Below are positions 10,206 to 62,529 of a stretch of 64,000 bases of DNA, in pieces (position 1 is the first letter of the stretch; each line of letters opens with the position of its first letter). The stretch lies in the IMG/VR virus record IMGVR_UViG_3300028862_000012, positions 124,001-188,000 of that record; one strand, given 5' to 3'. The notes beneath the pieces are model-generated. The model did not search any database. It worked only from the letters and a program-made list of their open reading frames with translations, and was not told where the DNA came from. The position numbers and the translations under genes were made by a program.

Positions 10206-11178
10206 TATATTATTTGATGAATACTTTTCAATGTTTGTTACTAATATACAGCGTAAATATTTAACTCATTATCAGGATCATCTATATCACCCCGAAAGCA
10301 CAGTTTTTTCGCATAGTAGATTAGTAGCACTGCTTTTACCTAATACACCTACTATGCAAATGTGTGCTTTGTTACATGATATAGGAAAGCTTAGTTGTAC
10401 TCAAGTTCATGTGAAACATAATACCTTGCGTATTCAAAATATAGGTCATGCAGAGATTAGTAATAATTGTATTGAACCACTCCGTAAGTATTTATTTAAT
10501 GAAATAAAAGATATTGATTGGGAGTGTGTGCATCAAGTAACATATTATCATATGCGCATGCATGATTATAATGATAATAAAATAAAAAAATCTGAAAAGA
10601 GGAAAGCTATGGAAGAGTTAAAGTATTTTAAAGAATTATCTATGTTTAGCACTGCTGATAAAAATGGAGTAGGCAGTAGTGAGTCTATGCTTCCCTATGT
10701 AGTAGTAACTGTTGGTATGAGCGGTAGCGGTAAATCTACGTGGCGCAAAAGTTTTATTACAGAAATGACAGAGGGTAAAACTCCTTTTATTGCTATTTGT
10801 CCTGATGACTTGCGCAAAGAGCTTACAGGAGATATTAGTAATCAGACTAAAAATAATGAAGTATGGGATAAAGCCTTTTCAATACTTGACTATTATATTT
10901 GTAACAAGCAGAATGTAGTGTTTGATAGTACCTGTACAAACCTTGATACTATGAAGCGTATTTTACGTCATTGTCAAAGTGATACAAAGCATAAAGCAAT
11001 AGTAATTTTTAAGATATTTAATGTAGATATTGATACTTGCAAATGTAGAGTTAATGATGATATACTGCATGGTGTAGATAGATCAAAAGTACCTATGGAA
11101 GTAATTGACAGACAATATGAAGGTTATAAAAAAGTAGTTGATTGGATTAAATCAAATGATAAGTTGATAATGGAGTAA
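10183..11178 (+). CDS. HD-domain phosphoesterase fused to P-loop polynucleotide kinase (HD-Pnk-like)
   Basis: HPE..VFSH, ALLHDIGK, GHAEIS, HM, AD..G (HD domain); VGMSGSGKSTW, CPDDLRKELTG, VVFDST (kinase). Confidence 0.85.
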   Translation: MKQYMKSNILFDEYFSMFVTNIQRKYLTHYQDHLYHPESTVFSHSRLVALLLPNTPTMQMCALLHDIGKLSCTQVHVKHNTLRIQNIGHAEISNNCIEPLRKYLFNEIKDIDWECVHQVTYYHMRMHDYNDNKIKKSEKRKAMEELKYFKELSMFSTADKNGVGSSESMLPYVVVTVGMSGSGKSTWRKSFITEMTEGKTPFIAICPDDLRKELTGDISNQTKNNEVWDKAFSILDYYICNKQNVVFDSTCTNLDTMKRILRHCQSDTKHKAIVIFKIFNVDIDTCKCRVNDDILHGVDRSKVPMEVIDRQYEGYKKVVDWIKSNDKLIME

Positions 11179-18024: not shown

Positions 18025-19152
18025 ATGGAATTACTTATATCTGAGTTTATTGAGCAGAATAATCATTGGAAAGACTGTATTACTCAAAAGCCCTATTGTA
18101 TAGAAGTAAAAGAGAAAAATGAATATACTCTATTAAAATATAATCAGATAGAAAGTAATTTTAATATTCCTTTGGTTCGTGAATGTAGAGGAATAATTCT
18201 TAGAGATAAAAAAATAGTATGTTTTCCCTTCAGAAAATTCGGAAATCAAGGAGAAGGATATGCTGATGATATTGATTGGGCAAGTGCTAAAGTTTTAGAA
18301 AAAGTAGACGGAAGTATTACTAAAATCTGGTTTGACATAACGTGGCATATATCAACTAATGGATGTATAGATGCTCATGATGCAGATATTCCAGACTGGG
18401 GTAGTGATTGCGAATATAAAAATTATTATGACCTTATTGAGTGTGCTTTAAAAAAGTATATTAAATTTGATAATCTAAGTGATTTAGATATAATTTTTAA
18501 GCATGTCTACACTTATATATTTGAAATGGTTTCGCCTTATACTAAAGTAGTAGTCCCTTATCCAGAAATAGATATTTATTTAATTGGAATTCGTAATAAT
18601 ATAACCTATGAAGAAGAATATATAAAGGAGCATGAATTAAGTACTATATTTAAAACACCTAAGTATTATGATATACATAGTTTAGATGACTGTATTGCTA
18701 TGACAAAAGAAATGCCTTTCAGTGAAGAAGGCTTTGTTGTAGTAGATAAGTATTTTCATAGAAATAAAATTAAGAGCATTGCGTATCTAAAAATATTTCG
18801 ATTGAAGGGTGAGGGTGTCGTTACTCCTAAGCGAATGCTTGAACTCATCCAGACTAATGAATCAGGAGAATTTTTAGCATACTTTCCTGAATATACAGAA
18901 ATGTATAATCTGTATAAATCTAAATATGATAAGTTAATTAAATATTTAGATGATTCCTTTGCTAACTTTTGGGAAATTTCTCATAGACTCAAAATAGTTC
19001 CCTGTCGGCAAAAACGTGCAGACCATATTAATAAGTACTATAAATGTCCTGACTTTATGTTTAAGCGATATGATAAAATGATAAAAGATGGATTAGAGTA
19101 TTGTTCAACTATGAGAATGGAAAACTTAGTTGAGTTATTGAAAAGTTTTTAA
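18025..19152 (+). CDS. T4 Rnl1-like RNA ligase
   Basis: LLKYNQ, ECRGIIL, PFRKFGN, EKVDGS (motif I), FEMVSP, EEGFVV (motif IV), KIKSIAY. Confidence 0.9.
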   Translation: MELLISEFIEQNNHWKDCITQKPYCIEVKEKNEYTLLKYNQIESNFNIPLVRECRGIILRDKKIVCFPFRKFGNQGEGYADDIDWASAKVLEKVDGSITKIWFDITWHISTNGCIDAHDADIPDWGSDCEYKNYYDLIECALKKYIKFDNLSDLDIIFKHVYTYIFEMVSPYTKVVVPYPEIDIYLIGIRNNITYEEEYIKEHELSTIFKTPKYYDIHSLDDCIAMTKEMPFSEEGFVVVDKYFHRNKIKSIAYLKIFRLKGEGVVTPKRMLELIQTNESGEFLAYFPEYTEMYNLYKSKYDKLIKYLDDSFANFWEISHRLKIVPCRQKRADHINKYYKCPDFMFKRYDKMIKDGLEYCSTMRMENLVELLKSF

Positions 19153-19841: not shown

Positions 19842-21047
19842 ATGAATAAAGCATATAAAGTTCGATTATATCCAAACATTACTCAAACTAAACTCATAAA
19901 TAAAACTTTTGGATGTACTCGATTTTTATATAATCAGATTTTGAATGAACATATTCAAGTATATGAAAAATATAAAAACGATAAAGAAGCTTTATTTAAT
20001 TATAAATACAAAACTGAAAAAGAGTACAAGCAGGAGTTTGAATGGCTAAAAGAAGTAAGCTCTCGCGCTTTACAACAGTCACATAGAGATTTACAAACAG
20101 CTTATACTAATTTCTATGCAGGATTAAAGAAATCTAAAAAAGTAGGTTTTCCAAAGTTTAAGTCAAAGCATAAATCACGCTTAAGTTATAGAGAGCCACA
20201 AGTAAGTGACTGTATTGAAATTAAAGATAATAAAATTAAATTACTAAAATTAGGCTATATAAAGTTTAGAGGATTAGATAAAAACTTCAGTGGCTGTATT
20301 AAATCAGTAATAGTTTATAAGTCTAAAACAAATAAATATTATGCTTCTATTTTAGTAGAAAAAACTATTGACAAAAAAGTTAGAATTAGTAATAATGATA
20401 TAGGAATTGATTTAGGATTAAAAGAGTTTGCTATATGCTCTAATGGAGAAATTATAAAAGGTATAAAACAAGATTTATATAATATTGAAAATACTACAAA
20501 AAGATTACATAAAAATTTAAGTAGAAAAAAGGCAGGATCAAAAAGATATGAAAAAGCGCGGCTAAAATTAGCAAAGAATTATGAATACAGTACTAATTAT
20601 TTAAATCATTTTCAGTGGAATTTAATAAAAAAGTTGTGTAGTGAAAATCAAACTATATCACTTGAAACATTGAAAGTAACTAATATGATTAAAAATAGAA
20701 AATTAAGTCATGCAATTCAGACTATTAGTTGGTCGAGCTTTGTTACAAAGTTAGAACAAAAAGCAAAAGAGTATAATACTGCTATTTATAGAGTTCCAAC
20801 TTTTTATGCAAGTTCTAAAATTTGTAGTCATTGCGGGAATAAAAAGCTAGAATTAAGTTTAGCAGAACGTGTTTATACGTGTGATGTTTGTGGATTTACT
20901 ATTGATAGAGACATTAACGCTTCTATTAATATTAAAAATTATAAGTCATTGGAGTACAATGATTACGAACGTGGAGAAAATGTAAGACCTGTAGAATTAT
21001 TTTATAATCCTGCTGGCTATTTCTATGAAGCGTTTAAGAGGAGTTAA
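19842..21047 (+). mobile_element. tnpB: IS200/IS605-family TnpB RNA-guided nuclease, no TnpA adjacent
   Basis: HTH_OrfB N-term KAYKVRLYP..FGCTRFLYN, RuvC-I IGIDLG, RuvC-II SLETL, Zn finger CSHC..CDVC, RuvC-III DRDINA; catalytic D/E/D intact. Confidence 0.93.
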
Positions 21048-22551: not shown

Positions 22552-24783
22552 ATGATAAATTATAATAAATTAATAGACAAAGAAATAAATAAGTTATTAA
22601 ATGAATCAGTAGATTTTGAAAAATATAACAAAATTCTTTTAGAGCATACTTTAGAGTATTTTAAATATACTAAAATAAATAAGTATTCATTAGATGATTA
22701 TTTTAGAGGTGCTAGTGAACCTGATTGGTTTTGGCTATTTTTAAATAATTTACTTAAACGTTATAATGAAGATATCTATACCGAGTATAAAGGTAAAATG
22801 ATAGAAACCTCTGAACTTGTAGGAAACACTTTTACTAAGTATTTAAATAAATTAGCAGGATCACATTTTAGACAAGGACAATGGGATTATGAAAAAATAG
22901 AAGAGTGGTTAAAAGAAAAATTGCAATTAAAAGAATCTATATTAAAAGAACAAATAACAAAAGATTCTATTAAAGAGCTTCAAAAGGAAGCGCAATTATA
23001 TAATAAAGCTATAATGAAAATAGACTCCCCTTATGATTTATATGAAGTAAGTAAGTCTATGCAGGATTATAGTATTAAATTGCATGACTACTTAGAAAAT
23101 ACTTTGAATAGTAGAATTGAAAATACTGGATGGAAGGATGGTCATGGAAATGATTTTAGCTTTTATCCTTTTCAAGAGTTTTATCAGTATTTACGAGAAG
23201 TATTAGATCCCTATAAACTTTCTGGAATTAGAAGAGCATACGATGATTGGAATAAATATGATGAAAATATATGGGTAAATCATTATAGCTCTTTTGAAAA
23301 AAGAAGAAAATCTTTATACACAATGTTTTCTCAAAAGCTAAAAAAAGCATTTGATAACTTGCAAGATTGGCTGGATACCTTTACTAATGGCTATGCACCT
23401 AATCGTTCATCAGAAGAGCTTATAACTTATAATGGTTTTAAAATTAAAGTAACATCTGATGAAGCTCACTCCAATTTCTTAAACTCTAGAGGTAGTAATA
23501 GCTACTCTGTAGAAGATTTCAAAAAAGATTTAGATAACCTAGTACATGACTTAAAGTCAAAATCTATATCACCTGCTTTTTTAAAAAATGCGGTATTTGA
23601 ATTTAATAATACTATTTCTCTGGATATAGGTGGTGATTATCAAGCAACAGGAAATATTATTTCTGTATTACCTGATAAGAAAGAATCTTATACTACTTTA
23701 GTTCATGAAGTGGGTCATTGTTATGAAGTTACTGTTATTTCAAAACAAGCAAGAAGCGCATGGCAAGAGTTTTACAGTGATCCAAAGAATTTTGTATACA
23801 TATCTGATGAGACAAAAAATAATATAAAAAAAGAATTAGAGATAATTTGTAGTAGTAAAGAAATTAAAGATGGCTATGAAGAAAACAAATATAATCATAA
23901 TGGTTTATATAGTATTAAAAATAAGATACGCTTGCAGTTATTAGCTAAGTTTAATAAAAACTCCACTGAATATAAATTATTAACTACATTATTTAATGAT
24001 ATAAAAATAGAGGCAATTGATTATCTTCCTAGCAAGCCAGATGACATTGATTTTTTTATGAGCATATTAAATAACCATGAACTAGGTGGAGTATTATTTC
24101 AAGATCGAATAATACTTAATAATATGTCATTATATAGTGCAAAAAATGAGAAGGAAGCTTTTGCAGAAATGTTTATGTACTATGTTTTAGATTATCATAA
24201 ACAAAAAGATTTCTCTGTTGATTTTATACATTTTTTTAAGTCTATTATTGGCGTATCCTCAACAATTAATGAATCTGTAAATATTACTACTTGGTATCAC
24301 GGATCACCTGATAAAATAACTCATTGGTCTACAGAGTTTATGGGCATAGGTGATGATCAAGAAGGTGCAGGAATTTATTTTACTTCCAATTATGATGACG
24401 CAAGCGGTTATAGTAAAAATAAGGGCTATGTTTATGAAGTTGAATTACATACTACTAAATGGATGAGTACTAAAGCAAAGCCAAAAGTTATTGAGTTAAA
24501 AAAACTTATAGAATTAGCAGATGATTATGAAACCACTTTAGGAAACTGGGGTAATGAAGATCCAGCTAAGGATATGAGAGACTGCTTGAATGACTATCTA
24601 CAATACAATAAAACTATGTTTGAAGCAGTTAAATCAGTATGTAATGATTTTTATCGTTATGATAGTGCAGGTTATTGTAATGCAATAATGTATATTGGAT
24701 ACGGTGGTGTAATAGTTCCAAAAAACTTAGGCGTTTTTCATGCTATAGTTTGGAATCCTAAAATAATTAAAAATATTAGTTGA
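22552..24783 (+). CDS. polyvalent-type protein: zincin metallopeptidase + C-terminal ADP-ribosyltransferase-like domain
   Basis: TTLVHEVGH and YS..NEKEAFAEMF (zincin); WYHGS, GAGIYFTS, ASGY, GYVYEVEL (ART-like). Confidence 0.7.
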   Translation: MINYNKLIDKEINKLLNESVDFEKYNKILLEHTLEYFKYTKINKYSLDDYFRGASEPDWFWLFLNNLLKRYNEDIYTEYKGKMIETSELVGNTFTKYLNKLAGSHFRQGQWDYEKIEEWLKEKLQLKESILKEQITKDSIKELQKEAQLYNKAIMKIDSPYDLYEVSKSMQDYSIKLHDYLENTLNSRIENTGWKDGHGNDFSFYPFQEFYQYLREVLDPYKLSGIRRAYDDWNKYDENIWVNHYSSFEKRRKSLYTMFSQKLKKAFDNLQDWLDTFTNGYAPNRSSEELITYNGFKIKVTSDEAHSNFLNSRGSNSYSVEDFKKDLDNLVHDLKSKSISPAFLKNAVFEFNNTISLDIGGDYQATGNIISVLPDKKESYTTLVHEVGHCYEVTVISKQARSAWQEFYSDPKNFVYISDETKNNIKKELEIICSSKEIKDGYEENKYNHNGLYSIKNKIRLQLLAKFNKNSTEYKLLTTLFNDIKIEAIDYLPSKPDDIDFFMSILNNHELGGVLFQDRIILNNMSLYSAKNEKEAFAEMFMYYVLDYHKQKDFSVDFIHFFKSIIGVSSTINESVNITTWYHGSPDKITHWSTEFMGIGDDQEGAGIYFTSNYDDASGYSKNKGYVYEVELHTTKWMSTKAKPKVIELKKLIELADDYETTLGNWGNEDPAKDMRDCLNDYLQYNKTMFEAVKSVCNDFYRYDSAGYCNAIMYIGYGGVIVPKNLGVFHAIVWNPKIIKNIS

Positions 24784-31865: not shown

Positions 31866-33086
31866 ATGAAACAAATTATAACCAGTTGTTTAGATACTGA
31901 TTTATATAAGTTCTCTCAAGGCCAACTATTTATGCATCAGTTTTCCGATATTGAAACTGAATGGACTTTTAAATGTCGTAGTGATGTATTTTTTACTCCT
32001 GAAATGGTAGAAGAAATTAAATTACAATTAGAAGCATATTGCAATTTGACTTTTACTAAAGATGAACTTAATTATTTATCTTCAACAAAATGGTTATCAA
32101 AAGATTACATAAGCTTCTTATCTGTATGGCATCCATTGTTTGAACATTTTACTATCAATACTAATAATAAATGTGGTTTAAATATTGTAACTCGTGGCCC
32201 TCAGTTTTTAATAAGCTACTATGAAATTCCTGCACTTGCTATTATTAATGAAGTATATTTTTATTATAAGTACAAAGATACTTATAGCAAACTTGAAAGC
32301 TCTTTTAGATATAGGTTATCTGAAAAAATAGATTCATTAGAAGCCAAAGAATTCTGTATAGGAACTTTTTCAGAGTTTGGAACGCGCCGAAGACTGTCTA
32401 AAGATATACAAGAGTATATGCTTATAAAACTTACTGAAAATTTTAATTCTGAATATGAAGATAATAACTTATTTGTGGGTACATCAAATGTATTTTTTGC
32501 TAAACAACTTGGAATAAAAGCAATTGGCACAATGGCTCATGAATCTGTAATGGTAATTGGACAAGGTTATTCAGAGTTTAATCCAGCTTATAGTAATGCT
32601 CGTATGATGGAAGCATGGCATAAAGAGTTTGGAACAGAGCTTGGTATTTATCTAACTGACACTATTACTACAGATTGCTTTTTGAAGGACTTTGATAAAC
32701 TGAATGCAACACTGTTTACAGGAGTGCGTCATGATAGTGGTGATCCCTATAAATGGGGAGAAAAAATAATAAAGCACTATATTGAATTAGATATTGATCC
32801 TCGTACTAAGACACTGCTATTTAGTGATAGTCTAAACTTTGAAAAAGCAGATAAATTATACAATGCTTTTAATAACAGAATACAGGTTGCTTTTGGAATA
32901 GGAACTTATTTATCAAATGATACTTTTGTAGACCCATTAAATATTGTTATGAAGATAACAGAAGCTAACGGAATTCCTGTTTGTAAACTATCTGATGATA
33001 TGGGTAAGTTTATGGGAAAGAGCGAACAGTATCTAAATTATCTACAGCGTTCTATTGATTGGAGAATTAATAATGAAAGTAAATAA
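31866..33086 (+). CDS. pncB: nicotinate phosphoribosyltransferase
   Basis: LDTDLYKF, YEIPALA, SEFGTRRR, GTSNV, GTMAHE, LTDT, GVRHDSGDP, FSDSL, FGIGT, LNIVMK, KLSDD.GK. Confidence 0.93.
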   Translation: MKQIITSCLDTDLYKFSQGQLFMHQFSDIETEWTFKCRSDVFFTPEMVEEIKLQLEAYCNLTFTKDELNYLSSTKWLSKDYISFLSVWHPLFEHFTINTNNKCGLNIVTRGPQFLISYYEIPALAIINEVYFYYKYKDTYSKLESSFRYRLSEKIDSLEAKEFCIGTFSEFGTRRRLSKDIQEYMLIKLTENFNSEYEDNNLFVGTSNVFFAKQLGIKAIGTMAHESVMVIGQGYSEFNPAYSNARMMEAWHKEFGTELGIYLTDTITTDCFLKDFDKLNATLFTGVRHDSGDPYKWGEKIIKHYIELDIDPRTKTLLFSDSLNFEKADKLYNAFNNRIQVAFGIGTYLSNDTFVDPLNIVMKITEANGIPVCKLSDDMGKFMGKSEQYLNYLQRSIDWRINNESK

Positions 33087-39836: not shown

Positions 39837-39864
39837 TAAAAAAGTTTATAACTATTAGTTAGTA

Positions 39865-39969
39865 GGGGTATATTTGGTTATCGATTTAGTGGTTGATTGA
39901 AGCGACGAAAGGCCCATATTACGAAAGCTTAGACTGCTAAAGACCGGAGTTCAAATCTCCGATGCTCCA
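39865..39969 (+). ncRNA. mini-tmRNA: tRNA-like domain only, no tag ORF
   Basis: acceptor GGGGTAT/ATGCTCC-A with G3-U70; 13-nt stemless D-loop ATTTGGTTATCGA; helix TTTAGTGGTT/GACTGCTAAA; GAC linker; T arm CGGAG-TTCAAAT-CTCCG; CCA not encoded. Confidence 0.8.
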
Positions 39970-39991
39970 ATAAAGTATAAAAGGAATAGTT

Positions 39992-40672
39992 ATGATTTTA
40001 CAAGAAAAAGAGTTTGAAATTACAAACAAAGATTTACAAGAAAGTTTTCCAGAATTATATGAAAAATATAAAGAAACCTTTGGTAGTAAGCGCCCTGATA
40101 TAAGCGTAGAGATACAGGATGAATATAACTTTCATGTTTCTGTAACTGATTGGCAATCTGATTACTGGAATCCAGTTATTTATTTCTTTTTGCATGATGG
40201 TAAAGTTGCTTATTTTGATGCAGGAGTAGATGGTGGAAAGGGTAATTTTCCTTTTGGAAAGTATAAATTAGGTGATTCAGATGCAATATTAGAATGTTAT
40301 ACTAAAAGTTTTAATCGTTGTAATCTAATAGTAAATAGTCATTTTATAAATAAACAAGCATTACCCGTATCAGAAGATTTAGACTTTGCAGAAGAGTATG
40401 TTTTGTGTTTAATGCATATGTATAAAGCAGCATTTAGACGTAAGAACTTTTTAAGCTATATTTATGATGGTAATTATACTGTAGATAATTGGAAACGTCC
40501 TATTAAGGAAGTGAAAAAAGCTGTGTTACAGTATGGAAACTACAAAGATGAAGCCTATGATGCAATATTACTTTCGTTGCAGATGAAAGATTTAGTTGTA
40601 ATAAATAGTGCAGGAAGTTCAAGACTTACAAATAAAGGAACAAATATAGCTATTCAATTGAACGGAAGATAA
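39992..40672 (+). CDS. hypothetical protein
   Basis: 226-aa ORF with RBS AAGGA, follows mini-tmRNA. Confidence 0.7.
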   Translation: MILQEKEFEITNKDLQESFPELYEKYKETFGSKRPDISVEIQDEYNFHVSVTDWQSDYWNPVIYFFLHDGKVAYFDAGVDGGKGNFPFGKYKLGDSDAILECYTKSFNRCNLIVNSHFINKQALPVSEDLDFAEEYVLCLMHMYKAAFRRKNFLSYIYDGNYTVDNWKRPIKEVKKAVLQYGNYKDEAYDAILLSLQMKDLVVINSAGSSRLTNKGTNIAIQLNGR

Positions 40673-46506: not shown

Positions 46507-47144
46507 ATGAATATGAAGAGATTAACTATATCTACAGTTATACAAAAGAAATCGGTACAATATACTTTGCGAATATATACAAAAAATAAGGCTACTATAA
46601 CCTACCCCGAAATAGAGAATAAACAAGTACAATATTATCGGAAATCAATTACTAATGACTCTAATATTAAGACACTTGAACGTTTTTTCAGAATTCAAAG
46701 TTTAGTAATTGAAGATACAGTAACATTGCAAGATGTTATTGAAAGACTGTAAGGAGGTAATATGAAAAATCGGGGTTTTAAGAAAGGTGATTTTACTGTA
46801 TATGTAACTATAGGAAAAGATACAAAAGGTAATGATTCCTTTGTAGGGACAATGTATGATAAAACAGAAAAGCTTATTATGCCTGTCTATTCCACTATTT
46901 CACATTTTGATTGTGCATTGAAAGGAATAGCTTATATGCGAACATTAAATGATATGCCGAGTAACTACAAATTAAAGGTGGCAGTATGAAAGAAACAGAA
47001 ATTATAGAATTTAAAAATGATTCTTTAATTATTAAAGAAAACTTTTTAATAAACTCTAAATACAAAGATATTAAAGCACTGCGAGAGAAGACCAAAGATG
47101 AAGAGGATTATATGCCAGATACTAACGCTTTGTGCTTGCAGTAA
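46507..47144 (+). other. three small hypothetical genes (46507-46752, 46762-46989, 46986-47144)
   Basis: ORFs with RBS/ATGA coupling. Confidence 0.55.
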
Positions 47145-47263
47145 TGTTAGTATAAAGTGTGATCTTATACTGAACAGTGGAATTTATGTTAGAACGACAA
47201 ACAACCGTGTACCGGCCTTGCGGCCACTACACGGATAATTTGCGGGAAGAAAAGGAGGGAAGA

Positions 47264-48091
47264 TTGACAGCATCAGAATTATTTTCTGGGAATAAACATA
47301 ATCACGGCGATCACAACTGCTATTACTGTGGTGCATCGTGTGATGAACAATATAAAACCGCTGATTACGTAAAAGATACGTTTACCAATCGCGATATTGT
47401 GAAATATCCACAGTCGCAATTTGTTTGTGTCGGCTGCGTTGAATCTCTAGGGAATGGCGAAGACAAAATGCCGTTCATCGACGGGACGGTGAAAGTCAGA
47501 GAGAACGCGCGTGGTATGTGCCCGCGAATGTATTCGTGGATTTTATTTACAGATCATAAGCTCGCCGGAACAAAGGCCCATATAAAAGAATGGCGCGAGC
47601 TTTTAGCCAATCCTCCCGAACCGCCATTTGCAGTAATCCTTGCAGATTCCGGGCAGAAGCAGTTGATATTCCGTGCACCTATCGCAATGAGTAAAAAGTG
47701 TTTTTCAATTCTTCTTGAAGATGAATGTATCGAAGTAATTCCCGAACAGCTTGCAGAACGCCTTGAAATGTGTACACCGATTTGCGCGGCTCTTGGCAAA
47801 CCTGCACTGCAGGGAGAAATCTCTTTTTCATCTTATACCCGATATAACGAATATCATGGTGAAATTGAAACTCTTGAAAAATGGTTGGCCATTCGTGACC
47901 AGCCTTTGTCGCGCCTTGCGGCGTGGTTATCGCTATCAAAGGAGAATGCACAGAATGAGTATGCAAGTATTGAGTGCGGAAAAGTTCCGGCAGGAACTCG
48001 CGGGACTAGTGGACAAAAGCCGGACGATTCCAGAAATGGAACTCGGAGTAATCAAGGATCAGGCGGTCAGGTTCTGCTCGATCTTGGCTGA
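47264..48091 (+). CDS. csf1: type IV CRISPR large subunit Csf1 (Cas8-like)
   Basis: CYYCG...TFTNRDIVKYPQSQFVCVGC Zn motif, PPEPPFAVILADSGQKQL; TTG 47264 follows SD AAGGAGG (preferred over GTG 47177). Confidence 0.85.
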   Translation: MTASELFSGNKHNHGDHNCYYCGASCDEQYKTADYVKDTFTNRDIVKYPQSQFVCVGCVESLGNGEDKMPFIDGTVKVRENARGMCPRMYSWILFTDHKLAGTKAHIKEWRELLANPPEPPFAVILADSGQKQLIFRAPIAMSKKCFSILLEDECIEVIPEQLAERLEMCTPICAALGKPALQGEISFSSYTRYNEYHGEIETLEKWLAIRDQPLSRLAAWLSLSKENAQNEYASIECGKVPAGTRGTSGQKPDDSRNGTRSNQGSGGQVLLDLG

Positions 48092-48443
48092 GGTGTTCGG
48101 CGAAGACCTTGACCGGAAAACTTTATGGGAGCGTATCGGAAACGGCCTTATTGTCGCAGCTGCAAAATGCGGCGGCGACTGGGAGCTGTTCGTCAATGAG
48201 ATGCTCAAATACATTAAGGCAGAACCGGGAAAAGTAGCGGCGAATCGCGGGCTTGCGGCTTTCATCGACGAGATGCTTGTTCGCCCGAAAGAATGGCAAG
48301 AGCAGTTTGTCCGCGAATGCGAGGCAAAGCATATGTTCATTTGCGTCAAAGCGCGGATGCTCTGGAACTCACGAAAAACACCACAGGACAATCCCGATGC
48401 AGAAGATCGTTTGACCGGAGGTGCAGAAAATGGAACTAATTAA
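47955..48443 (+). CDS. cas11: type IV-B small subunit (Cas11-like)
   Basis: all-helical 162-aa ORF between csf1 and csf2, LWERI..G and ICVKAR.LW motifs; ATG 47955 follows SD AAGGAG. Confidence 0.7.
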   Translation: MSMQVLSAEKFRQELAGLVDKSRTIPEMELGVIKDQAVRFCSILAEVFGEDLDRKTLWERIGNGLIVAAAKCGGDWELFVNEMLKYIKAEPGKVAANRGLAAFIDEMLVRPKEWQEQFVRECEAKHMFICVKARMLWNSRKTPQDNPDAEDRLTGGAENGTN

Positions 48444-49386
48444 AAACTGCAAAATACATTGCCTTTCAACGGCATTATCTCCGATCACGCACATGATGGG
48501 AACCTCTGGGAATGAATCCGTCATCAACCGCGAATCAGTCCTGTTCAAAAATAAAATCAGACAGGTTCCGGTTCTGTCTGGCAACGCAATTCGTCACAAG
48601 ATGATACGCGATCCAGGCGGCCTCTACCTTATCAAAGAGTGCGGACTTGTCGGGAAGCTGAACATCGATCAAGCGAATTACCTACTGAATGGCGGTTCTC
48701 TGACAGAATCTTCGACAACGGAAAACCTTGGGCGTATTGCAGAAATGCAAACACTCATGCCGCTCACCCGACTGCTCGGAGGATCACTACGAAATCAGGT
48801 TATCGGTGGATCTCTGTTTGTTCTTCGAGGGCTTTTGGTCTGCGAGGAAAACAGAAGCCAGATTCAGAAACAACTTCCAGAAGGCTACGAACTTCCTGAA
48901 CAGGCATTGCGTTCGGCGGAAGATTTCATCGATCAATATCAGTACACCCGCGGAGATGCGCAAAAACGGAACGACGCTGATCTTATGCTTGAAGAAAAAT
49001 CCGATGACGTAAAATCAAATCTTATGATTTACAACGGACAGGATGTAATTCCCGGTTCTGTTTTCTATCATGGGTTCACCTTACAGAATATTTCACCGAT
49101 CGAAGTAGGGGCATTGCTCCATTCGCTTATTCAGTGGGATGCAGCGGGCGGATTTATCGGAGGTCAATCACGCATAGGACATGGAAAACTCAAGATGTCG
49201 ATTTTCTTCGAGGACGGAGACGACTTCATGGGAAATGAACTCAATCCGGCTGATATCGTGAAAATGTATATCGACCACGTACACGCGAATGCAGAAAAAA
49301 TTGCGCAATGGCTCGATGATACATTCCCGAACAAAGGGAAAAAAGCGGACGCGAAAAAACTTGCTGAAGGAGCGCTCGGCTTATGA
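48430..49386 (+). CDS. csf2: type IV CRISPR backbone Csf2 (Cas7-like)
   Basis: TALSPITH, VPVLSGNAIRHKMIR, LLNGGSL, RLLGGS, YQYTRGD, MIYNGQDVIPGS, Gly-rich loop IGGQSRIGHG. Confidence 0.9.
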   Translation: MELIKNCKIHCLSTALSPITHMMGTSGNESVINRESVLFKNKIRQVPVLSGNAIRHKMIRDPGGLYLIKECGLVGKLNIDQANYLLNGGSLTESSTTENLGRIAEMQTLMPLTRLLGGSLRNQVIGGSLFVLRGLLVCEENRSQIQKQLPEGYELPEQALRSAEDFIDQYQYTRGDAQKRNDADLMLEEKSDDVKSNLMIYNGQDVIPGSVFYHGFTLQNISPIEVGALLHSLIQWDAAGGFIGGQSRIGHGKLKMSIFFEDGDDFMGNELNPADIVKMYIDHVHANAEKIAQWLDDTFPNKGKKADAKKLAEGALGL

Positions 49387-50063
49387 TAAAGAACTGGAAA
49401 GTCACCGCATGGCTTTCCAGCCCTTTGGCTGGAGAACCCCCACAGTTTGACGCAATACTCGGATGGGAACTTGCGCGTCGGCTTGGGTATAAACATTGCC
49501 GAAAGCTTACAAGAGATACGCCGTTGAGCGATATTCAAAATCCGCCGATCCCACTTGCGCAGCGTACTATTTCAGGCGTTGACGTGTTCTGCTGTTCAGC
49601 GCCGATACTTCCCGAGCCTCATGATGAATGGGTTGAGAGAATATCAAAGCGGATTGACACCGACGAAATAGCCTTGCTTCTTGCGCCTGAGTTCCGCAAG
49701 TCTCTGCTTGTAGCATCTGGCCCGTATAAGATGCGGTATGTTCCTGAGCGGATTCGCCTTATTGATTGCGTATGCTGGTTTGTACGTGGAGATAGAAAAG
49801 AAATACACAAGCTAGTAAAATCAGTCTATGCGATTGGGAAGCATCGTAATATTGGGTATGGTCAGGTTGAAGATTGGACGTTTGAAGAAACTGAAGAAGA
49901 TTATTCCATCTCTGCATTACGTCAAGGCAAGCCGGTGCTTATGAAAATAATTCCGTTCGGAAGCGAATGTCAAAATATGACTGGATACAAACATTCTTTC
50001 GGCGCGGCGAATATGCCGTATTGGCATCCGGAGAATTATCGGGAGATTGCTTCTCCATGTTGA
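49383..50063 (+). CDS. csf3: type IV CRISPR Csf3 (Cas5-like)
   Basis: WKVTAWLSSPL...FDAILGW, PIPL, WFVRGD, IGKHRNIGYGQVEDW, PYWHP. Confidence 0.85.
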   Translation: MIKNWKVTAWLSSPLAGEPPQFDAILGWELARRLGYKHCRKLTRDTPLSDIQNPPIPLAQRTISGVDVFCCSAPILPEPHDEWVERISKRIDTDEIALLLAPEFRKSLLVASGPYKMRYVPERIRLIDCVCWFVRGDRKEIHKLVKSVYAIGKHRNIGYGQVEDWTFEETEEDYSISALRQGKPVLMKIIPFGSECQNMTGYKHSFGAANMPYWHPENYREIASPC

Positions 50064-50344
50064 TTGACAAGAAGATAATATTTAGAGCCGGGACGGATAC
50101 GAAAGAATTATATTTATGTGTTGCGGCTCTAAATAAATATCTTGTAGAAAACGAGATAAGATCAAACGATAGAGAACGGACATACAACGTCCACAACAAC
50201 ACGAAAGAAATATACATACGTGAGAGAAGTAAAAGTATTTTTGTGAGGTATAAAAAATTAAAAGAACCGAAAGCGCGAGCGCGAAAAGATAAACAGTTAA
50301 CGAGAGAAACTACAAACAGTACATATGGAGATGGTAGGTGTTAA
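50057..50344 (+). CDS. small basic hypothetical protein inside the cas operon
   Basis: ATG 50057 overlaps csf3 stop, stop overlaps cysH-like start; 95 aa. Confidence 0.55.
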   Translation: MLIDKKIIFRAGTDTKELYLCVAALNKYLVENEIRSNDRERTYNVHNNTKEIYIRERSKSIFVRYKKLKEPKARARKDKQLTRETTNSTYGDGRC

Positions 50345-51033
50345 TAATAACAGATCGTCATACAGAAAAAGATTTGAAACTTTGGAAAGAGTATAAGGAG
50401 ATTGATAAAATATCAACATACTCTGAAAAGAAAATAGAGCTTGCAAAAAAATCTATCAATGAGTTTTCATGTAAACATATTGATACTGTTATATATACGT
50501 CATGGGGAAAGGATTCGATTATTCTTCTTCATCTTGTCGCGCTAATGGAATTAAAATATCCGGTTGTATATGTACGTTTTAATGACCGCGATAATCCAGA
50601 TTGTGAATTAGTTCGCGATGCGTTTCTGAAGAAATACAATATTGATTATCACGAGGAATATTTTGATTATAAACGCGTTCGTGCAAAAGATTTGCACTGG
50701 AAAGAAACGGCTAATAAATATGGGCATCATAGAATTACCGGAATAAGAAACGATGAATCAGGGCGTCGATTATTGAACTGGAAAAAATACGGCTTCTTTT
50801 CAGAAAATACTTGTCGCCCATTATCATTGCTTACAAACAAAGAAGTATTCGCATATATTTATCATAATGATTTACCGCTATGCCCTGTATATGGATACCT
50901 CGGAGGTGGAAGATGGCCACGTGAAAACATACGAACTCATTCACTCGCAGGTTCAAGTGCGGATGGTTTCGGACGAACGGAATGGGAGTTCGAATATTAT
51001 CCTGATATTTTGAACAGAATTAAGAGTTTCTAA
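50338..51033 (+). CDS. cysH: CysH/PAPS-reductase-like protein (type IV-B associated)
   Basis: PP-loop TSWGKDS, ITGIRNDESGRR, CRPLSLLTNKEVFAYI..NDLPLCPVY. Confidence 0.85.
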   Translation: MLIITDRHTEKDLKLWKEYKEIDKISTYSEKKIELAKKSINEFSCKHIDTVIYTSWGKDSIILLHLVALMELKYPVVYVRFNDRDNPDCELVRDAFLKKYNIDYHEEYFDYKRVRAKDLHWKETANKYGHHRITGIRNDESGRRLLNWKKYGFFSENTCRPLSLLTNKEVFAYIYHNDLPLCPVYGYLGGGRWPRENIRTHSLAGSSADGFGRTEWEFEYYPDILNRIKSF

Positions 51034-51037
51034 TAAC

Positions 51038-51076
51038 TGGTTCCACCTGACAATCTTGCGGATTGCAGGTGAACCA
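51038..51076 (+). repeat. bulged hairpin after cysH-like gene
   Basis: TGGTT/AACCA, CACCTG/CAGGTG, CAATC/GATTG, loop TTGCG. Confidence 0.75.
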
Positions 51077-51092
51077 AGTGTTAGGTTGACGC

Positions 51093-51130
51093 TCAATCCA
51101 TATAGCGCCAGTAGCTGCTATATGGATTGA
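51093..51130. terminator. 14-bp perfect hairpin
   Basis: TCAATCCATATAGC / GCTATATGGATTGA, followed by A-run rather than T-run. Confidence 0.6.
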
Positions 51131-51183
51131 CCGCAAAAAAGAGCGAAAAAGTGCATTTTTCTGCCTTTTTTTACATTATTTAG

Positions 51184-51212
51184 TTGACATAATATCTTGA
51201 TTGTAGTATGCT
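51184..51212 (+). promoter_or_regulatory. sigma70-type promoter TTGACA-17-TATGCT
   Basis: sequence match upstream of ORF 51285. Confidence 0.75.
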
Positions 51213-51284
51213 TTAATCAAGGTTGATAGTTAAGGCAACCAAATCTAAACGACCTACGGGCTGGTCAGTAAACCCGAAAAACAA

Positions 51285-51557
51285 ATGAAGCACGGAAAAC
51301 TTACCAGAGAACAGGCTATCGAAATCGCAGGATCAGAGATCGTCAAAAAGCTCGATTATGTTAACTGCGAACCCACAAGCCGGTTACAGTGCGACGGCGA
51401 CGACTCAACCGAGTACACCGCATCACTCAAGACCGCCAACGGCGAAACGCTTATTGCCTACTACTACACAACACCCGAGCAAGAGCAGACAATTGCAGAC
51501 GCAGACGCAGATGGTTCGGCGATAGACTGGGAAATCAACGGATACGAGGTTATTTGA
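51285..51557 (+). CDS. acidic hypothetical protein (island)
   Basis: 90-aa GC-rich ORF, TGATG-coupled to next gene. Confidence 0.7.
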   Translation: MKHGKLTREQAIEIAGSEIVKKLDYVNCEPTSRLQCDGDDSTEYTASLKTANGETLIAYYYTTPEQEQTIADADADGSAIDWEINGYEVI

Positions 51558-51739
51558 TGCAACACGGCGGCAAGCGAAATGGGGCGGGCCGCCGCCCTAT
51601 TTTTGAAAAAACAAAGCTGACCCAAATACGGGTAAATCAGGAAATCTGGGACGCTATCCCGGCACCAAAAGCGGCATGGGTTAGGGAAGCGATTGAAGAA
51701 AAAGCGAAAAAAAAGAACCTAACAACTGCCTTAACCTGA
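51557..51739 (+). CDS. ribbon-helix-helix-like DNA-binding protein with GGKRxGAGR hook
   Basis: MQHGGKRNGAGRRP..TQIRV..W...AAWVREAIEEK; ATG overlaps upstream TGA. Confidence 0.6.
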   Translation: MQHGGKRNGAGRRPIFEKTKLTQIRVNQEIWDAIPAPKAAWVREAIEEKAKKKNLTTALT

Positions 51740-51767
51740 TGTTAATTTAGAAGACGATTTAAAAGAT

Positions 51768-54432
51768 TTGAAAGGAGTAAATTCAATGGCAGTAATACAA
51801 ATGGCGCATGATCTTCCGTCTGATGTTATTGGAAAAACATGGAAGAAAAAAAATCTTGAAATTACACATAAAATTTCTTTGTGGTCATTAGTTGAAATTA
51901 ATTATGAAGATGCTCCTAATAAAGGTGTTCGCTTGTTGGTATGTAAGCATACTCGTGACTGTGATGGTACTCCACTTTATTCCTTGACTTGGGATCGTAA
52001 TTATTATGAGCAGTTTGTCAATAATCAATATATGACTGTTTCAACCAATGGATATAGCGAAGAAGATCTTAAAGTAATACTATGTTTCAATCAACATTGC
52101 TAATAAATATTGCTGATGATAAACATGAATTTTCAATATGTGGTAATAGAAGATGTGATGCTGGAATATCTAGTGTTGCTTATTCTGCTTATCATGCTGG
52201 AATATTAGGATGGAGAAATGTGGAATTGCCAAAAGATGAAGCAAAAGCATATGGGAAAAAGTTTTTATTACTTTGTCCAGAGTGTTATAGAGTATTAGAT
52301 AAGATACTTATTTATAAGGTATAAAAGGAGTTTTTTATGAAAATGACTGCTATAATTTGTCTTGAACCTGATGAAATTCAGAAAGCGGTAATAGCTTATA
52401 TTGAAAAAGAAACAAATAAAAAAGTTGATATAAAATCTTTTAGCTTTACTACAGGTACTCGGTCTGTTGGATCTGGCTTGTCAGAACATGATGAATGGTG
52501 TTTTAAAGGATGTACTGTTAAAGTTATAGATGCTTAATATTTATTGGAGTAAAAATGTTTGAGTCAAGTTGTTCAAATTGCGATGATATAGAATGTCTAG
52601 TTAGAGATTATTCCTATGACTGTTATAAGGAAGAAATTAAAGATATACAACAGTGCATGGATAGTTACGATATTGAACTTATTAAAAAGATTATTGATAG
52701 GTCGGATATTCTATATAAACAAACACAGAATGATAAGTTTTATCAGTTTTCTTATTTTGGAAAACAGATACTTGATTGCTTTAATGGTGAGTAAGGAAAT
52801 AAGTATGGAATATATTTTTAATGAACAGGAATATAAAGAATCTTTAGAAAACAAAAAAAATTGCTGAAGTATCTAAAGTTAATCAACAAGTAATTGAAAA
52901 ATACTTTAGTGAGAATTGCAATCGAAAGAAGCATGGTTATTGCGATAACTGTATTATTTTAGGAACTACTGTTTTATCAGGTGAATGGAATAAGTGTTTA
53001 GCAAATTTGTTTATAGAATGTTCAAAGTAAAAGGAATGAATATAAAGAATACAGAATTAGAAGAGTTGATTAGCCAGTTTATAGAAACACAATCTGATAA
53101 TGATACAGGTGAGTGTTGTATTTCTTCTAAAGAAATGTCAGAGCAAGTTATGGAAGGATTTAAAGATTTTCTAAAATTAAAGGGTAAACGGATTAAATAA
53201 TATGGAAAAGGTAACACCTAATGCAATACAAGCAAATGGTTTTTATAATCATTTTTCTGGTATGAAAAAATGGACCATAACTTGTGATAGATGTAACCAT
53301 ACTTGGGTAGAAAAAGTTCCAATAGTAGAACCTTCTTCAGTAGTTTGTCCCTGCTGTTGTACTCAAAATATATGGTCAATTGTTAAGTTTGAAAAAGAAT
53401 ACAATAAAGTAAATAATTAAGGAGATACTATGTACGATCCGATCTATGTAATTAATTTACAGATTCATGCTTGCTTTGCAAGCTTTTCCTCTCGTGATAT
53501 TTATATGTACAAAGAAATATCAAAATCAGAGTTTGATAAAGAAAAACTTTCTGTAACTGGTGACTATATTTTTGAAGATACAGAATATGGCTTGTTTGAA
53601 ATATTTATTGAGGATACTACTTATTATAATGTAAGCATACCTACAAACTATGCTACTCTAGCTGAGATGCAAATGCTGATTGATAAGTATACTCTTGAAC
53701 TTGGCTATTCTAGAAATAAGTCAGAAGCGTATAATGATCGTTATGAACTTAGAAAGCTAAATGAAGAAAAAATAAAAGCAGATGAAAGAAAACAAGCAGG
53801 GTATATTTATTATATCAGTGTAGACTGGAAGTATGATCAGAAATTAGCGCAAGGTGGTTTTTCTGATGACTTATGGAATTATGAAAAAACACAGCAATAT
53901 ACTAAAAGTAAATCTTTTGGATATTTTGGTCATAATGTGCGAAAAGAAGAATTGGATATTTATATAGAGAAAGCTTTGAAAGATATTCATAGTAAATCTA
54001 AATTTCCATCAATTGATTATAGAGAAATTTGCTATAGTTATTTAAGTTCCTCTGATGCACGTCATATGTGTGATACTCTTGAAGATATTCCTTTTGAAGC
54101 ACAAAAAAAAGACATTGATAATAAAATAAAATCTATGTGGAATAATGCTTATATCTATGGAAAGAAAGAGCATGATGGAACATTTTATGGAACCATGAAT
54201 TTAATGGATAAGTATAAAGAGGATTTGTTTGACTATGAATAAAGATATAACAAAACTTTTAAAGTGCTATGCTACTTATTGTGATACTAATATTGATTGT
54301 TTACTTACTGAAAGGCAAATGGTTTTATCAAAAGAATATACGATTAAAATCGATGAATTATTTGATAGATATTTATCTTCAATGGCAGAGTTTAAAAACT
54401 GCATTGAACTTATATTAAAACATAAAGACTAG
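51768..54432 (+). other. run of small hypothetical phage genes
   Basis: AT-rich packed ORFs resume after the island, incl. 53430-54242. Confidence 0.55.
52805..53030 (+). pseudogene. small gene split at an A8 run
   Basis: removing one A of 52853-52860 extends MEYIF..ENKK into IAEVSK..CSK ending TAA 53030 just before the next RBS. Confidence 0.55.
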
Positions 54433-62510: not shown

Positions 62511-62529
62511 TAATAGTTAATAACTATTA
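62511..62529. promoter_or_regulatory. back-to-back TAACTATTA motifs (TAATAGTTA-A-TAACTATTA)
   Basis: perfect inverted pair between the divergent peptidase and terminase genes. Confidence 0.6.

Follow-up and report, generated by a model that had tools for sequence, protein, structure and literature searches.

A phage-encoded 105-nt RNA with the tRNA-like domain of tmRNA and no tag template

Natural tmRNA homologs lacking a tag-coding part are on record from organelles and from a single phage. The mitochondrial mt-tmRNAs of jakobids and oomycetes and plastid forms of about 65 nt are reduced to the tRNA-like domain (TLD) and are thought to work with SmpB and without tagging (PMC11915505, PMC4131195). 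TLD-only tmRNAs co-occur with imported SmpB in some mitochondria (PMC11915505). Mycobacterium phage DS6A carries a TLD-only tmRNA (tmRNA Website tmID 11587; PMC4131195, PMC11915505), whereas other phage-borne ssrA homologs, such as those of the mycobacteriophage Bxz1 group, Bacillus phage G, and marine myophages such as Melnitz, are full length, keep a tag reading frame, are found by ARAGORN, and are often near tRNA genes (PMC4131195, PMC9004378, PMC7162821). Engineered truncations of E. coli tmRNA share the design of an acceptor/T arm, a D-loop, and a capped helix 2. Such constructs accept the peptide in vitro with SmpB (Shimizu and Ueda 2006, as cited in PMC3895274) and are reported to inhibit tmRNA strongly in E. 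coli, whether or not they can be charged, and titration of SmpB has been suggested as the cause (Mao et al. 2009, as cited in PMC4131195; PMC11915505).

We analyzed a 64,000-nt stretch (the window; positions 124,001 to 188,000 of IMG/VR record IMGVR_UViG_3300028862_000012) of a 224-kb phage, for which a mini-tmRNA consisting of a complete, unpermuted alanyl-tRNA-like domain had been predicted from sequence alone. The original prediction proved correct as an observation, and every feature listed in it was found in the sequence (Table 1). The RNA is 105 nt long and encodes no CCA. The acceptor stem contains G3-U70 and is followed by A73, the D-loop has no stem, the T arm has a loop of the GUUCRANNC type, and helix 2 comprises 10 bp, including three G-U pairs, and encloses 37 nt.

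Table 1. Features of the mini-tmRNA locus and of neighboring genes (window coordinates)
Position	Strand	Feature	Observation
10183-11178		P-loop kinase	Part of an RNA-repair set
14122-16623		PNKP-ligase/methyltransferase fusion	Part of an RNA-repair set
18025-19152		Rnl1-type RNA ligase	Part of an RNA-repair set
39849-39857	+	TAACTATTA, phage promoter-like motif	Ends 7 nt before G1; promoter role inferred
39865-39969	+	Whole mini-tmRNA gene	Single covariance-model hit in the window, 94.5 bits
39865-39871	+	Acceptor stem, 5' strand (GGGGUAU, with G3)	Pairs 1-4 invariant (G3-U70 lies within pairs 1-3), pairs 5-7 covarying in 19 relatives
39872-39884	+	Stemless D-loop, 13 nt (AUUUGGUUAUCGA)	GG and UCGA signatures of tmRNA; one extra base between them relative to the bacterial consensus
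39885-39894	+	Helix 2, 5' strand	Pairs with 39932-39941; 9 of 10 pairs changed on both sides, 97.4% of cells paired
39895-39899	+	Junction (GAUUG) between helix 2 and inner hairpin	3-5 nt and U-rich in group A relatives
39900-39903	+	Inner stem P3, 5' strand (AAGC)	Pairs with 39927-39930; all 4 pairs covary (GC, CG, AU, UA, and UG types) in 19 sequences
39904-39926	+	Core of inner domain: GA, CG (P4), 14-nt loop AAAGGCCCAUAUUA with GCCCA at 39912-39916, CG (P4), AAA	CG/CG pairs invariant in 19 of 19 sequences and therefore uninformative on pairing
39927-39931	+	P3, 3' strand (GCUU), plus unpaired A	The unpaired A is conserved
39932-39941	+	Helix 2, 3' strand (GACUGCUAAA)	
39942-39944	+	GAC linker	Invariant in the family alignments, but required by the search patterns; matches the bacterial 3' consensus GGAC
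39945-39961	+	T arm (CGGAG UUCAAAU CUCCG)	4 of 5 pairs covary, 100% of cells paired
39962-39969	+	Acceptor stem, 3' strand (AUGCUCC, with U70), and A73	
39992-40672	+	226-aa ORF	Starts 22 nt downstream of the RNA; probably co-transcribed with it

A chance match was excluded. A degenerate TLD pattern matched once in the window, against 0.00 matches expected from 100 shuffles, and a covariance model built from relatives gave no second hit in the 64 kb. Thermodynamic stability alone was unremarkable, the predicted fold being no more stable than shuffled sequence (z = -0.87), so that the case rests on covariation. In an alignment of 19 relatives, 96.6% of cells were paired, as compared with 68% in shuffles and about 50% in slid controls; 20 of 28 pairs showed changes on both sides, and the covariation score was 0.749 against 0.177. 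A related phage (locus L180; neighboring protein 74% identical) has the RNA at the same site. There, UAU/AUG of the acceptor stem is replaced by AUA/UAU, amounting to three compensatory pairs, and the other differences fall in loops and the junction. A second assembly, IMGVR_UViG_3300031918_000008, is identical at this locus.

We next compared the RNA with established families. ARAGORN reported no tmRNA, tag, or tRNA in the window, and Rfam gave no hit at gathering thresholds. At E<=10 only the T arm matched the bacterial tmRNA model RF00023, with 7.1 bits against a gathering score of 47. No mt-tmRNA model matched at E<=10, and RF04321 gave 10.1 bits against 47 over the 3' strand plus unrelated downstream sequence; moreover, the gene order here is unpermuted. 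The RNA is not a tRNA-Ala cloverleaf, as there is neither a D stem nor a 7-nt anticodon loop. The acceptor stem, the D-loop signatures, the GAC linker, the T arm, and the start of helix 2 do match the bacterial tmRNA consensus, which in 70 bacterial tmRNAs reads GGtTTCGAC at the D-loop. C21 is replaced by U, with a compensating A on the 3' strand (UA in 12 and CG in 7 relatives). A position-weight comparison with bacterial TLD ends was spoiled by a 1-nt D-loop indel and by GC bias and was not used as a test. Bacterial tmRNA is about 350-400 nt long, and its resume codon, tag frame, and pseudoknots PK1-PK4 have no counterpart in the 105-nt RNA. The 37 nt inside helix 2 form one covarying hairpin with an invariant GCCCA loop instead. 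The pattern GA...GCCCA...AAA is shared by relatives of groups A, A', and B, whereas AAA.GCCCA occurred in 0 of 74 bacterial tmRNAs. A pairing partner for the GCCCA loop (pseudoknot, D-loop, acceptor 5' strand) and resemblance to pseudoknot 1, the sarcin-ricin loop, or a Shine-Dalgarno sequence were sought by eye only, and nothing was consistent across relatives.

The absence of a tag template was examined in the relatives. No frame is conserved: counting from GCCCA, the three frames reached a stop in 6, 12, and 6 of 19 sequences. A very short tag (AHITKA in the window) was considered but rejected, because a 1-nt indel inside the would-be frame separates the window from its closest relative and because the UAG is lost wherever P3 covaries.

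The DS6A element was located at JN698994 28478-28557 (80 nt, unannotated). Like the window RNA, it is unpermuted and has a complete TLD with G3-U70 and A73, a stemless D-loop ending UCGAC, a T arm, and a helix 2 that closes over a short element with no tag frame. It differs in having a helix 2 of 5-6 bp and a small A-rich hairpin interior, and it belongs to an abundant class of 78-80 nt. The model built from the window's group hit the DS6A element at 45.5 bits, a score that comes from the TLD and helix 2; the interiors differ, and no primary sequence similarity was detectable by blastn. The phages are unrelated (68% against 28% GC). The organellar forms differ in lineage and context, are smaller than the window RNA, and lack the extra conserved hairpin.

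At least 135 distinct mini forms of 62-136 nt were found in viral contigs, and the length class recurs in many metagenomes. ARAGORN and Rfam missed all of them; ARAGORN also called no tRNA among 105 mini forms scanned, most of them short. Full-length phage tmRNAs with tags of 12-15 residues were also met (loci L005, L007, and L044). Of the 135 unique mini forms, 31 lie within 300 nt of a tRNA gene, rising to 18 of 42 in the 87-140 nt class, and some sit inside phage tRNA arrays. CCA follows A73 immediately in 10 of 10 members of group B, 2 of 2 of group A', and 5 other relatives, i.e. 17 of the longer relatives, but in none of the 20 group A members; it was also encoded in 44 of a set of 105 unique forms, most of them short. 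The search patterns did not require CCA. Most family members were, however, retrieved with patterns that force GGGG...UCCA, and the invariance of G3-U70 and A73 is therefore partly an effect of retrieval. Both features were kept in members found without constraining the acceptor, namely L180, identified by synteny, and 6 of 6 in an acceptor-blind scan. Only about 7 true mini forms were found in 185,579 bacterial species genomes. The two that were checked (L131 and L140) sit in phage-like tRNA arrays on contigs of uncultured MAGs, that of L140 being only 3.1 kb. Searches by blastn with the locus and three family representatives against 50,697 phage genomes returned nothing, and short-form queries matched only generic T-arm and acceptor ends of annotated tmRNAs, tRNAs, or att sites.

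The surroundings of the RNA were also inspected. The motif TAACTATTA occurs 11 times in the window against 3.6 expected; no shuffle out of 100 reached 11, and 9 copies are on the + strand. Most copies lie 20-45 nt upstream of ATG codons in intergenic gaps (e.g. 21159, 27799, 40702, and 44030), and the motif is conserved 6 nt upstream of G1 in L180 although the spacer sequence differs. No terminator-like site lies between the RNA and the 226-aa ORF, and the arrangement is the same in L180/L181. Homologs of the ORF product at 54-55% identity (L182 and L183) have no RNA upstream, so the link is not obligatory. The protein gave no Pfam or PHROG hits, and its AlphaFold model (mean pLDDT 55) is confident only for a winged-helix-like C-terminal part and has no significant PDB match. 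Neighboring proteins are shared among mini-form loci only within related phage groups, and no partner is universal. An HMM built from 36 bacterial SmpB sequences gave no hit in the window or in 813 kb of loci that carry mini forms. The helicase and the repair-fusion protein have only remote phage relatives, at 22-30% identity, and host assignment failed.

The interpretation offered in the original prediction is partly supported. That the RNA might be a recent deletion relic or a collapsed assembly had been named beforehand as grounds for refutation, and neither applies: relatives show compensatory changes, independent assemblies agree, and the length class recurs in many metagenomes. A genuine, unpermuted tmRNA-type TLD without an mRNA-like domain is supported. 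The description "mRNA domain deleted" is not, because it implies a truncated tmRNA, whereas the interior is a conserved, covarying hairpin domain of its own. The statement that such RNAs are known from some mitochondria but not from phages is wrong in view of DS6A. The proposed functions as an SmpB/EF-Tu decoy or a tag-less rescuer match what the literature suggests for DS6A.

We consider it most likely, with moderate confidence, that the RNA is a phage-encoded homolog of tmRNA, one member of a widespread phage family, that acts as a tag-less competitor of host tmRNA and depends on host SmpB. The analysis shows the fold, its covariation, the absence of a tag template, and the recurrence of the family; transcription, processing, charging, SmpB and EF-Tu binding, ribosome entry, and inhibition of host trans-translation are inferred, from sequence and from work on other molecules, inhibition being reported only for an engineered E. 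coli TLD. In this view, transcription from the promoter-like element would place the start at or next to G1, the 3' end would be cut after A73, and CCA would be added by the host enzyme. Host AlaRS would then charge the RNA with alanine through G3-U70 and A73, assuming that host AlaRS and SmpB are compatible with it. SmpB would bind the D-loop/helix 2 elbow, and EF-Tu would deliver the complex to ribosomes stalled on non-stop mRNAs in competition with host tmRNA. The nascent chain would receive one alanine but, for want of a resume codon or tag frame, no ssrA degradation tag. Release of the ribosome by hydrolysis or drop-off, through ArfB- or Pth-type activities, is speculative and has no support here. 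The net effect would be that host tagging is suppressed while stalled ribosomes are still recycled for phage use. Against this model, no CCA is encoded here, and because no terminator separates the RNA from the next ORF, it may remain part of an mRNA leader. The conserved GCCCA hairpin is not explained by this model; it might be either a binding site for a protein or for the ribosome or a stabilizing cap that replaces pseudoknot 1.

Other explanations appear less likely. The RNA might be a pure sponge that titrates host SmpB, and perhaps EF-Tu or AlaRS, off the ribosome, shutting down trans-translation without ever productively entering stalled ribosomes. The reported inhibition by TLD-only constructs irrespective of charging, the lack of a phage SmpB gene in the window or in any fetched flank, and the presence of the SmpB-binding elbow signatures agree with this possibility. 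A sponge, however, needs neither an intact acceptor end nor CCA, yet the acceptor stem is kept by compensatory changes and CCA is encoded in many relatives, both pointing to selection for charging; moreover, shutting down rescue without replacing it would trap ribosomes that the phage needs. We regard this reading as possible but unlikely. Still more doubtful is a counter-defense decoy that absorbs or misleads host systems sensing or cutting tRNA or tmRNA, such as RNases or systems with SmpB-like domains, for which support is weak and circumstantial. The window encodes the RNA-repair set listed in Table 1, L024 (a locus with a different class of mini form) has an Rnl1 homolog and a kinase about 8 kb away, and DS6A encodes an RtcB-like ligase. 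CoCoNuT restriction systems carry SmpB-like domains that are predicted to bind tmRNA (PMC11090510), and a phage anti-CRISPR associates with tmRNA and tRNA fragments (PMC11662646). This co-occurrence rests on three cases without statistics, large phages often carry RNA ligases, the RNA lacks an anticodon loop, which is the usual target of anticodon nucleases, and nothing here links it to any particular defense system.

The RNA might act in cis as an mRNA-processing or leader element and not as a free aminoacylated RNA, either as an RNase P/RNase Z punctuation signal or as a stabilizing 5' structure for the 226-aa gene. The lack of a terminator between the RNA and the ORF and the conserved arrangement in L180 fit this idea, and a different class (group C) is embedded in frame in the 3' end of portal genes, showing that TLD folds can sit inside mRNAs. 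Alanine identity elements and encoded CCA would nevertheless be unnecessary for punctuation, many members sit in tRNA arrays with no adjacent ORF, and the downstream gene has homologs without the RNA; we consider this reading improbable. A non-functional relic or assembly artifact is very unlikely. Such things do exist, as locus L125 from a Pseudescherichia MAG consists of two joined pieces of E. coli ssrA, each 99-100% identical to the ends of the 360-nt gene. Here, as far as sequence evidence can go, the identical assemblies, the compensatory changes in L180, and 19 or more homologs from independent metagenomes that share the architecture with strong covariation refute it, and the inner domain, although conserved, is absent from the bacterial tmRNAs compared. 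An attP or ssrA-integration remnant was rejected because the 5' acceptor strand and the D-loop are present and many copies sit in tRNA arrays.

A broader reading, which we regard as possible though less likely than not, is that phage mini-tmRNAs are a large, essentially unrecognized class, with several structural subclasses, that takes over the host's ribosome-rescue pathway. In the window's subclass, the GCCCA hairpin would be a dedicated module that could recruit a host or phage factor or contact the ribosome, turning the alanyl-TLD into a tag-free rescue or termination device or into a counter-defense tool acting together with the phage's RNA-repair genes. The variants written in frame into portal genes would then point to a cis-acting use of the same fold.

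A covariance model for these RNAs would improve phage genome annotation. The natural variants, which are conserved and carry class-specific caps, would provide probes for what the TLD alone does on the ribosome, for how ribosomes are released without a tag template, a question that applies equally to mitochondrial TLD-only tmRNAs, and for the role of the GCCCA hairpin. Trans-translation is the main ribosome-rescue and protein-tagging pathway in bacteria and a drug target. If phages commonly carry alanine-accepting, tag-less tmRNA mimics, then manipulating ribosome rescue is a widespread phage strategy that standard annotation has missed.

The RNA gene in the window was read exactly as described in the original prediction. 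The acceptor stem is formed by GGGGUAU pairing with AUGCUCC (G3-U70) and is followed by A73, and the D-loop, AUUUGGUUAUCGA, is stemless and 13 nt long. Helix 2 comprises 10 bp, UUUAGUGGUU with GACUGCUAAA, including three G-U pairs, and is followed by the GAC linker and the T arm CGGAG-UUCAAAU-CUCCG. Helix 2 encloses 37 nt, and CCA is not encoded. The window is part of IMGVR_UViG_3300028862_000012, a viral contig of 223,865 bp with 28% GC (window position + 124,000 = contig position). The genes in the window are almost all on one strand and include those for tail-fibre-like proteins, a DnaB-like helicase, a DnaC-like loader, an NAD-dependent ligase, and ThyX. Coordinates of this and all other features are collected in the table; handles beginning with L denote loci on other contigs retrieved during the analysis.

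Coordinates of the mini-tmRNA and of other features observed in the window and in the compared loci
Locus	Position	Strand	Feature
Window	39865-39969	+	mini-tmRNA
Window	21159, 25756, 27799, 34910, 39849, 40702, 44030, 59512, 62521	+	TAACTATTA motif
Window	31637, 62511	-	TAACTATTA motif
Window	10183-11178	+	P-loop kinase (AAA_33/Zeta-type fold)
Window	14122-16623	+	833-aa fusion of a methyltransferase with a PNKP-type ligase domain (Pnkp/Hen1-like)
Window	18025-19152	+	T4 Rnl1-type RNA ligase
Window	19842-21047	+	TnpB (IS605 OrfB / Cas12f-like)
Window	22552-24783	+	743-aa protein with a C-terminal ART-PolyVal ADP-ribosyltransferase domain
Window	31866-33086	+	nicotinate phosphoribosyltransferase (NAD salvage)
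Window	~47000-52000		GC-rich island
JN698994 (Mycobacterium phage DS6A)	28478-28557		TLD-only tmRNA, unannotated
L125	4791-4889	+	E. coli-type ssrA lacking its middle ~260 nt
L010	3341-3432	+	group C TLD-like element
L008	2-93	-	group C TLD-like element
L019	4649-4740	-	group C TLD-like element
L020	1802-1893	-	group C TLD-like element
L034	5970-6061	+	group C TLD-like element
L016	1567-1661	-	95-nt tRNA-like RNA
L036	2440-2534	-	95-nt tRNA-like RNA
L030	1990-3345	-	ClpX/ClpB-type AAA+ ATPase
L024	2466-4550	+	homolog of the Rnl1-type ligase of the window, and a kinase
L024	12123-12234		mini-tmRNA of a different class
L157	1977-2075	+	hit with the GCCCA inner motif and a T arm

To determine whether the element is more than a chance match or an artefact, the window was scanned with a degenerate TLD pattern, which matched once, against 0.00 matches expected. 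ARAGORN and Rfam did not recognise the RNA, and its predicted stability was ordinary (z = -0.87). The case therefore rests on comparative evidence. A second assembly from another metagenome, IMGVR_UViG_3300031918_000008, was base-for-base identical over the locus, arguing against a collapsed assembly. L125, a locus in a Pseudescherichia MAG, served as a contrast and showed what a genuine collapse or deletion relic looks like: two pieces of E. coli ssrA, each 99-100% identical to the ends of that gene, are joined there, either by a deletion or by an assembly collapse.

Pattern scans of viral contigs returned dozens of RNAs with perfect 7-bp acceptor and 5-bp T stems. The RNA of the window belongs to a group of about 104-109 nt, termed group A, to which a metagenome scan keyed on the inner motif added about 17 more members. 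One metagenome hit with the GCCCA inner motif and a T arm, L157, has a 3' end that reads CAGGUCCA, and no matching 5' acceptor strand was found for it; it may be a degenerate or differently organised member. A covariance model built from 21 sequences (R1) found exactly one hit in the window, at 94.5 bits. On the model-based alignment of 19 distinct group A sequences, 96.6% of cells were standard pairs, against 68.2% in column shuffles and 38-52% when partners were slid. In that alignment, 20 of 28 pairs had changes on both sides, and the covariation score was 0.749 against 0.177. Covariation was seen in helix 2 (9 of 10 pairs), the T stem (4 of 5), acceptor pairs 5-7, and the inner stem P3 (4 of 4). 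It has to be kept in mind that the alignment was fitted to the structure and that most sequences were retrieved with patterns demanding GGGG...UCCA. Checks that left the acceptor unconstrained were in agreement: an acceptor-blind scan gave 6 of 6 unique members with G3-U70 and A73, and the same holds for a relative derived from synteny.

This closest relative was found through the protein encoded downstream of the RNA, which has a 74%-identical homolog on two small contigs, L180 and L181. A mini-tmRNA sits at the same place there and scored 99.5 bits. Compared with the window, acceptor positions 5-7 change from UAU/AUG to AUA/UAU, amounting to three compensatory pairs, whereas the remaining differences fall in the D-loop, the junction, the inner loop (including a 1-nt indel), and the T loop. 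Helix 2, P3, P4, GCCCA, G3-U70, and A73 are unchanged. Such a pattern is what purifying selection on an RNA fold produces, and it refutes the reading as a recent deletion relic, which had been named beforehand as a way in which the prediction could fail. More distant homologs of the protein (54-55% identity) have no such RNA upstream.

We further determined whether the element could encode a tag. No reading frame was conserved across group A. In the window, GCC CAU AUU ACG AAA GCU UAG could be read as AHITKA-stop, but the 1-nt indel in L180 breaks that frame, and the UAG is lost wherever stem P3 covaries. Instead, the interior is a hairpin consisting of P3 (AAGC with GCUU, covarying), then GA opposite AAA, then an invariant CG/CG step, and then a 14-17-nt loop with invariant GCCCA. 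The GA...GCCCA...AAA core is shared with a second group (group B, 106-109 nt) and with a GC-rich variant (A'). AAA.GCCCA occurred in none of 74 full-length bacterial tmRNAs, and no pairing partner for GCCCA was found by eye.

The motif TAACTATTA ends 7 nt before G1. It is over-represented in the window (11 copies against 3.6 expected, 9 of them on the coding strand) and mostly lies 20-45 nt upstream of start codons, including those of tail genes; a back-to-back pair at 62511/62521 lies where the coding strand switches. In L180, it is conserved 6 nt upstream of G1 although the spacer differs. We read it as a probable phage-specific promoter element that, by inference, would start transcription at or next to the mature 5' end. 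No terminator separates the RNA from the next ORF, which starts 22 nt downstream, and the 3' end would therefore be made by cleavage.

Elsewhere in the family, the genes sit inside phage tRNA arrays, as exemplified by the loci L016, L023, L028, L029, L030, L040, L043, L052, L053, L055, and L056. Overall, 31 of 135 unique forms lie within 300 nt of a tRNA gene, as do 18 of 42 in the 87-140-nt class. CCA follows A73 directly in 10 of 10 group B members, 2 of 2 A' members, and 5 others, but in none of the 20 group A members. It is also encoded in 44 of 105 unique forms from two further scans, most of them short. Because CCA was never part of a search pattern, this is independent evidence that the RNAs mature into acceptor-ended, tRNA-like molecules. 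In L016 and L036, a 95-nt tRNA-like RNA that is not called by ARAGORN lies next to the group B mini-tmRNA. It has a GGAAGAG/CUCUUCC acceptor stem, A then CCA, and two T-arm-like hairpins, and both this RNA and the mini-tmRNA are preceded by CUUACAAC. In L030, the tRNA array that holds the group B mini-tmRNA lies immediately downstream of a gene for a ClpX/ClpB-type AAA+ ATPase (Pfam AAA_2 plus ClpB_D2-small; no ClpX zinc-finger hit), with homologs in L016, L036, L053, L055, and L056. ClpX is the unfoldase for ssrA-tagged proteins, but these phages are related to each other, so the association may be coincidence. No SmpB homolog was present in the window or in 813 kb of loci, so any SmpB must come from the host.

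A TLD-like element of 92 nt, termed group C, was observed in a different setting. In five loci (L008, L010, L019, L020, and L034), it lies in frame within the last ~35 codons of a lambda-type portal gene, just upstream of a ClpP-like prohead protease gene, and the codon phase is the same in all five. Substitutions are mostly synonymous (6-9 against 1-3 per pair in most comparisons) and at the same time compensatory in the T stem and helix 2. It appears to be a tRNA-like fold written into a coding sequence.

A scan for shorter forms gave at least about 93 unique sequences of 62-85 nt with length peaks at 63-64 and 78-80 nt, and a scan with a longer gap gave a further 12 of 118-136 nt. ARAGORN called none of these 105. 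In all, at least 135 distinct mini forms were seen in viral contigs. In one genome for each of 185,579 bacterial and archaeal species, the same pattern gave 95 hits, almost all of which are the 3' parts of ordinary tmRNAs. Only about seven of those hits are true mini forms, and the two that were checked (L131 and L140) lie in phage-like tRNA arrays on MAG contigs. The class is therefore essentially viral.

A phage RNA of this type is already on record. Hudson, Lau and Williams list "Mycobacterium phage DS6A (TLD only)" and note that a similar molecule, chargeable or not, strongly inhibits tmRNA, perhaps by titrating SmpB (PMC4131195, citing Mao et al. 2009). The 2025 tmRNA database paper mentions only DS6A as the phage case, beside CDS-less organellar forms (PMC11915505). 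We located the DS6A element, which is 80 nt long, was hit by R1 at 45.5 bits, and belongs to the abundant 78-80-nt class. Surveys of phage tmRNAs relied on ARAGORN (PMC9004378, PMC7162821), which misses these forms. Full-text searches, in a collection without subscription journals, found no description of a widespread phage class or of the GCCCA domain.

We favor the interpretation that the RNA is a tag-less, SmpB-dependent competitor of host tmRNA. In this view, it would be charged with alanine and delivered by EF-Tu with host SmpB to non-stop ribosomes, where it would accept the nascent chain and, having no template, prevent ssrA tagging; the ribosome would then be released by hydrolysis or drop-off. 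What the analysis itself established is the fold and its conservation, the identity elements, the tRNA-like genomic handling, and the absence of a tag frame and, in the sequences searched, of a phage SmpB. The literature reports that TLD-only RNAs accept the peptide in vitro (PMC3895274) and inhibit tagging in vivo (PMC4131195). Transcription, processing, charging, and SmpB binding are inferred for this RNA, and the release step and the benefit to the phage remain speculative.

The main rival is a passive SmpB sponge, and the conservation of the acceptor helix and of CCA argues for more than that. A counter-defence role is suggested only loosely, by RNA-repair genes in the same window, near another mini form, and in DS6A. 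The set in the window, consisting of the kinase, the methyltransferase-ligase fusion, and the Rnl1-type ligase, suggests that the host attacks tRNAs or other RNAs. The other mini form, a different class of 112 nt, is carried by L024, a 140-kb viral contig that also encodes a close homolog of the Rnl1-type ligase of the window (E = 2e-70) and a kinase about 8 kb away. The window additionally encodes TnpB inside the phage genome, the protein with an ADP-ribosyltransferase domain, and, separately, the NAD salvage enzyme. Its GC-rich island (up to 48% GC against 28% elsewhere) contains several ORFs that start with GTG, two that match PHROGs of unknown function (phrog_22746 and phrog_34599), and one that is PAPS-reductase-like, and it may be an acquired DNA-modification cassette.

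Taken together, the observation of a mini-tmRNA at this locus was confirmed. The interpretation given in the original prediction was partly supported: its structural part is right, but the claims that the mRNA domain is deleted and that such RNAs are unknown in phages did not hold. The RNA has a conserved domain of its own, and whereas TLD-only tmRNAs of phages were known from a single example, it reveals that they are common.
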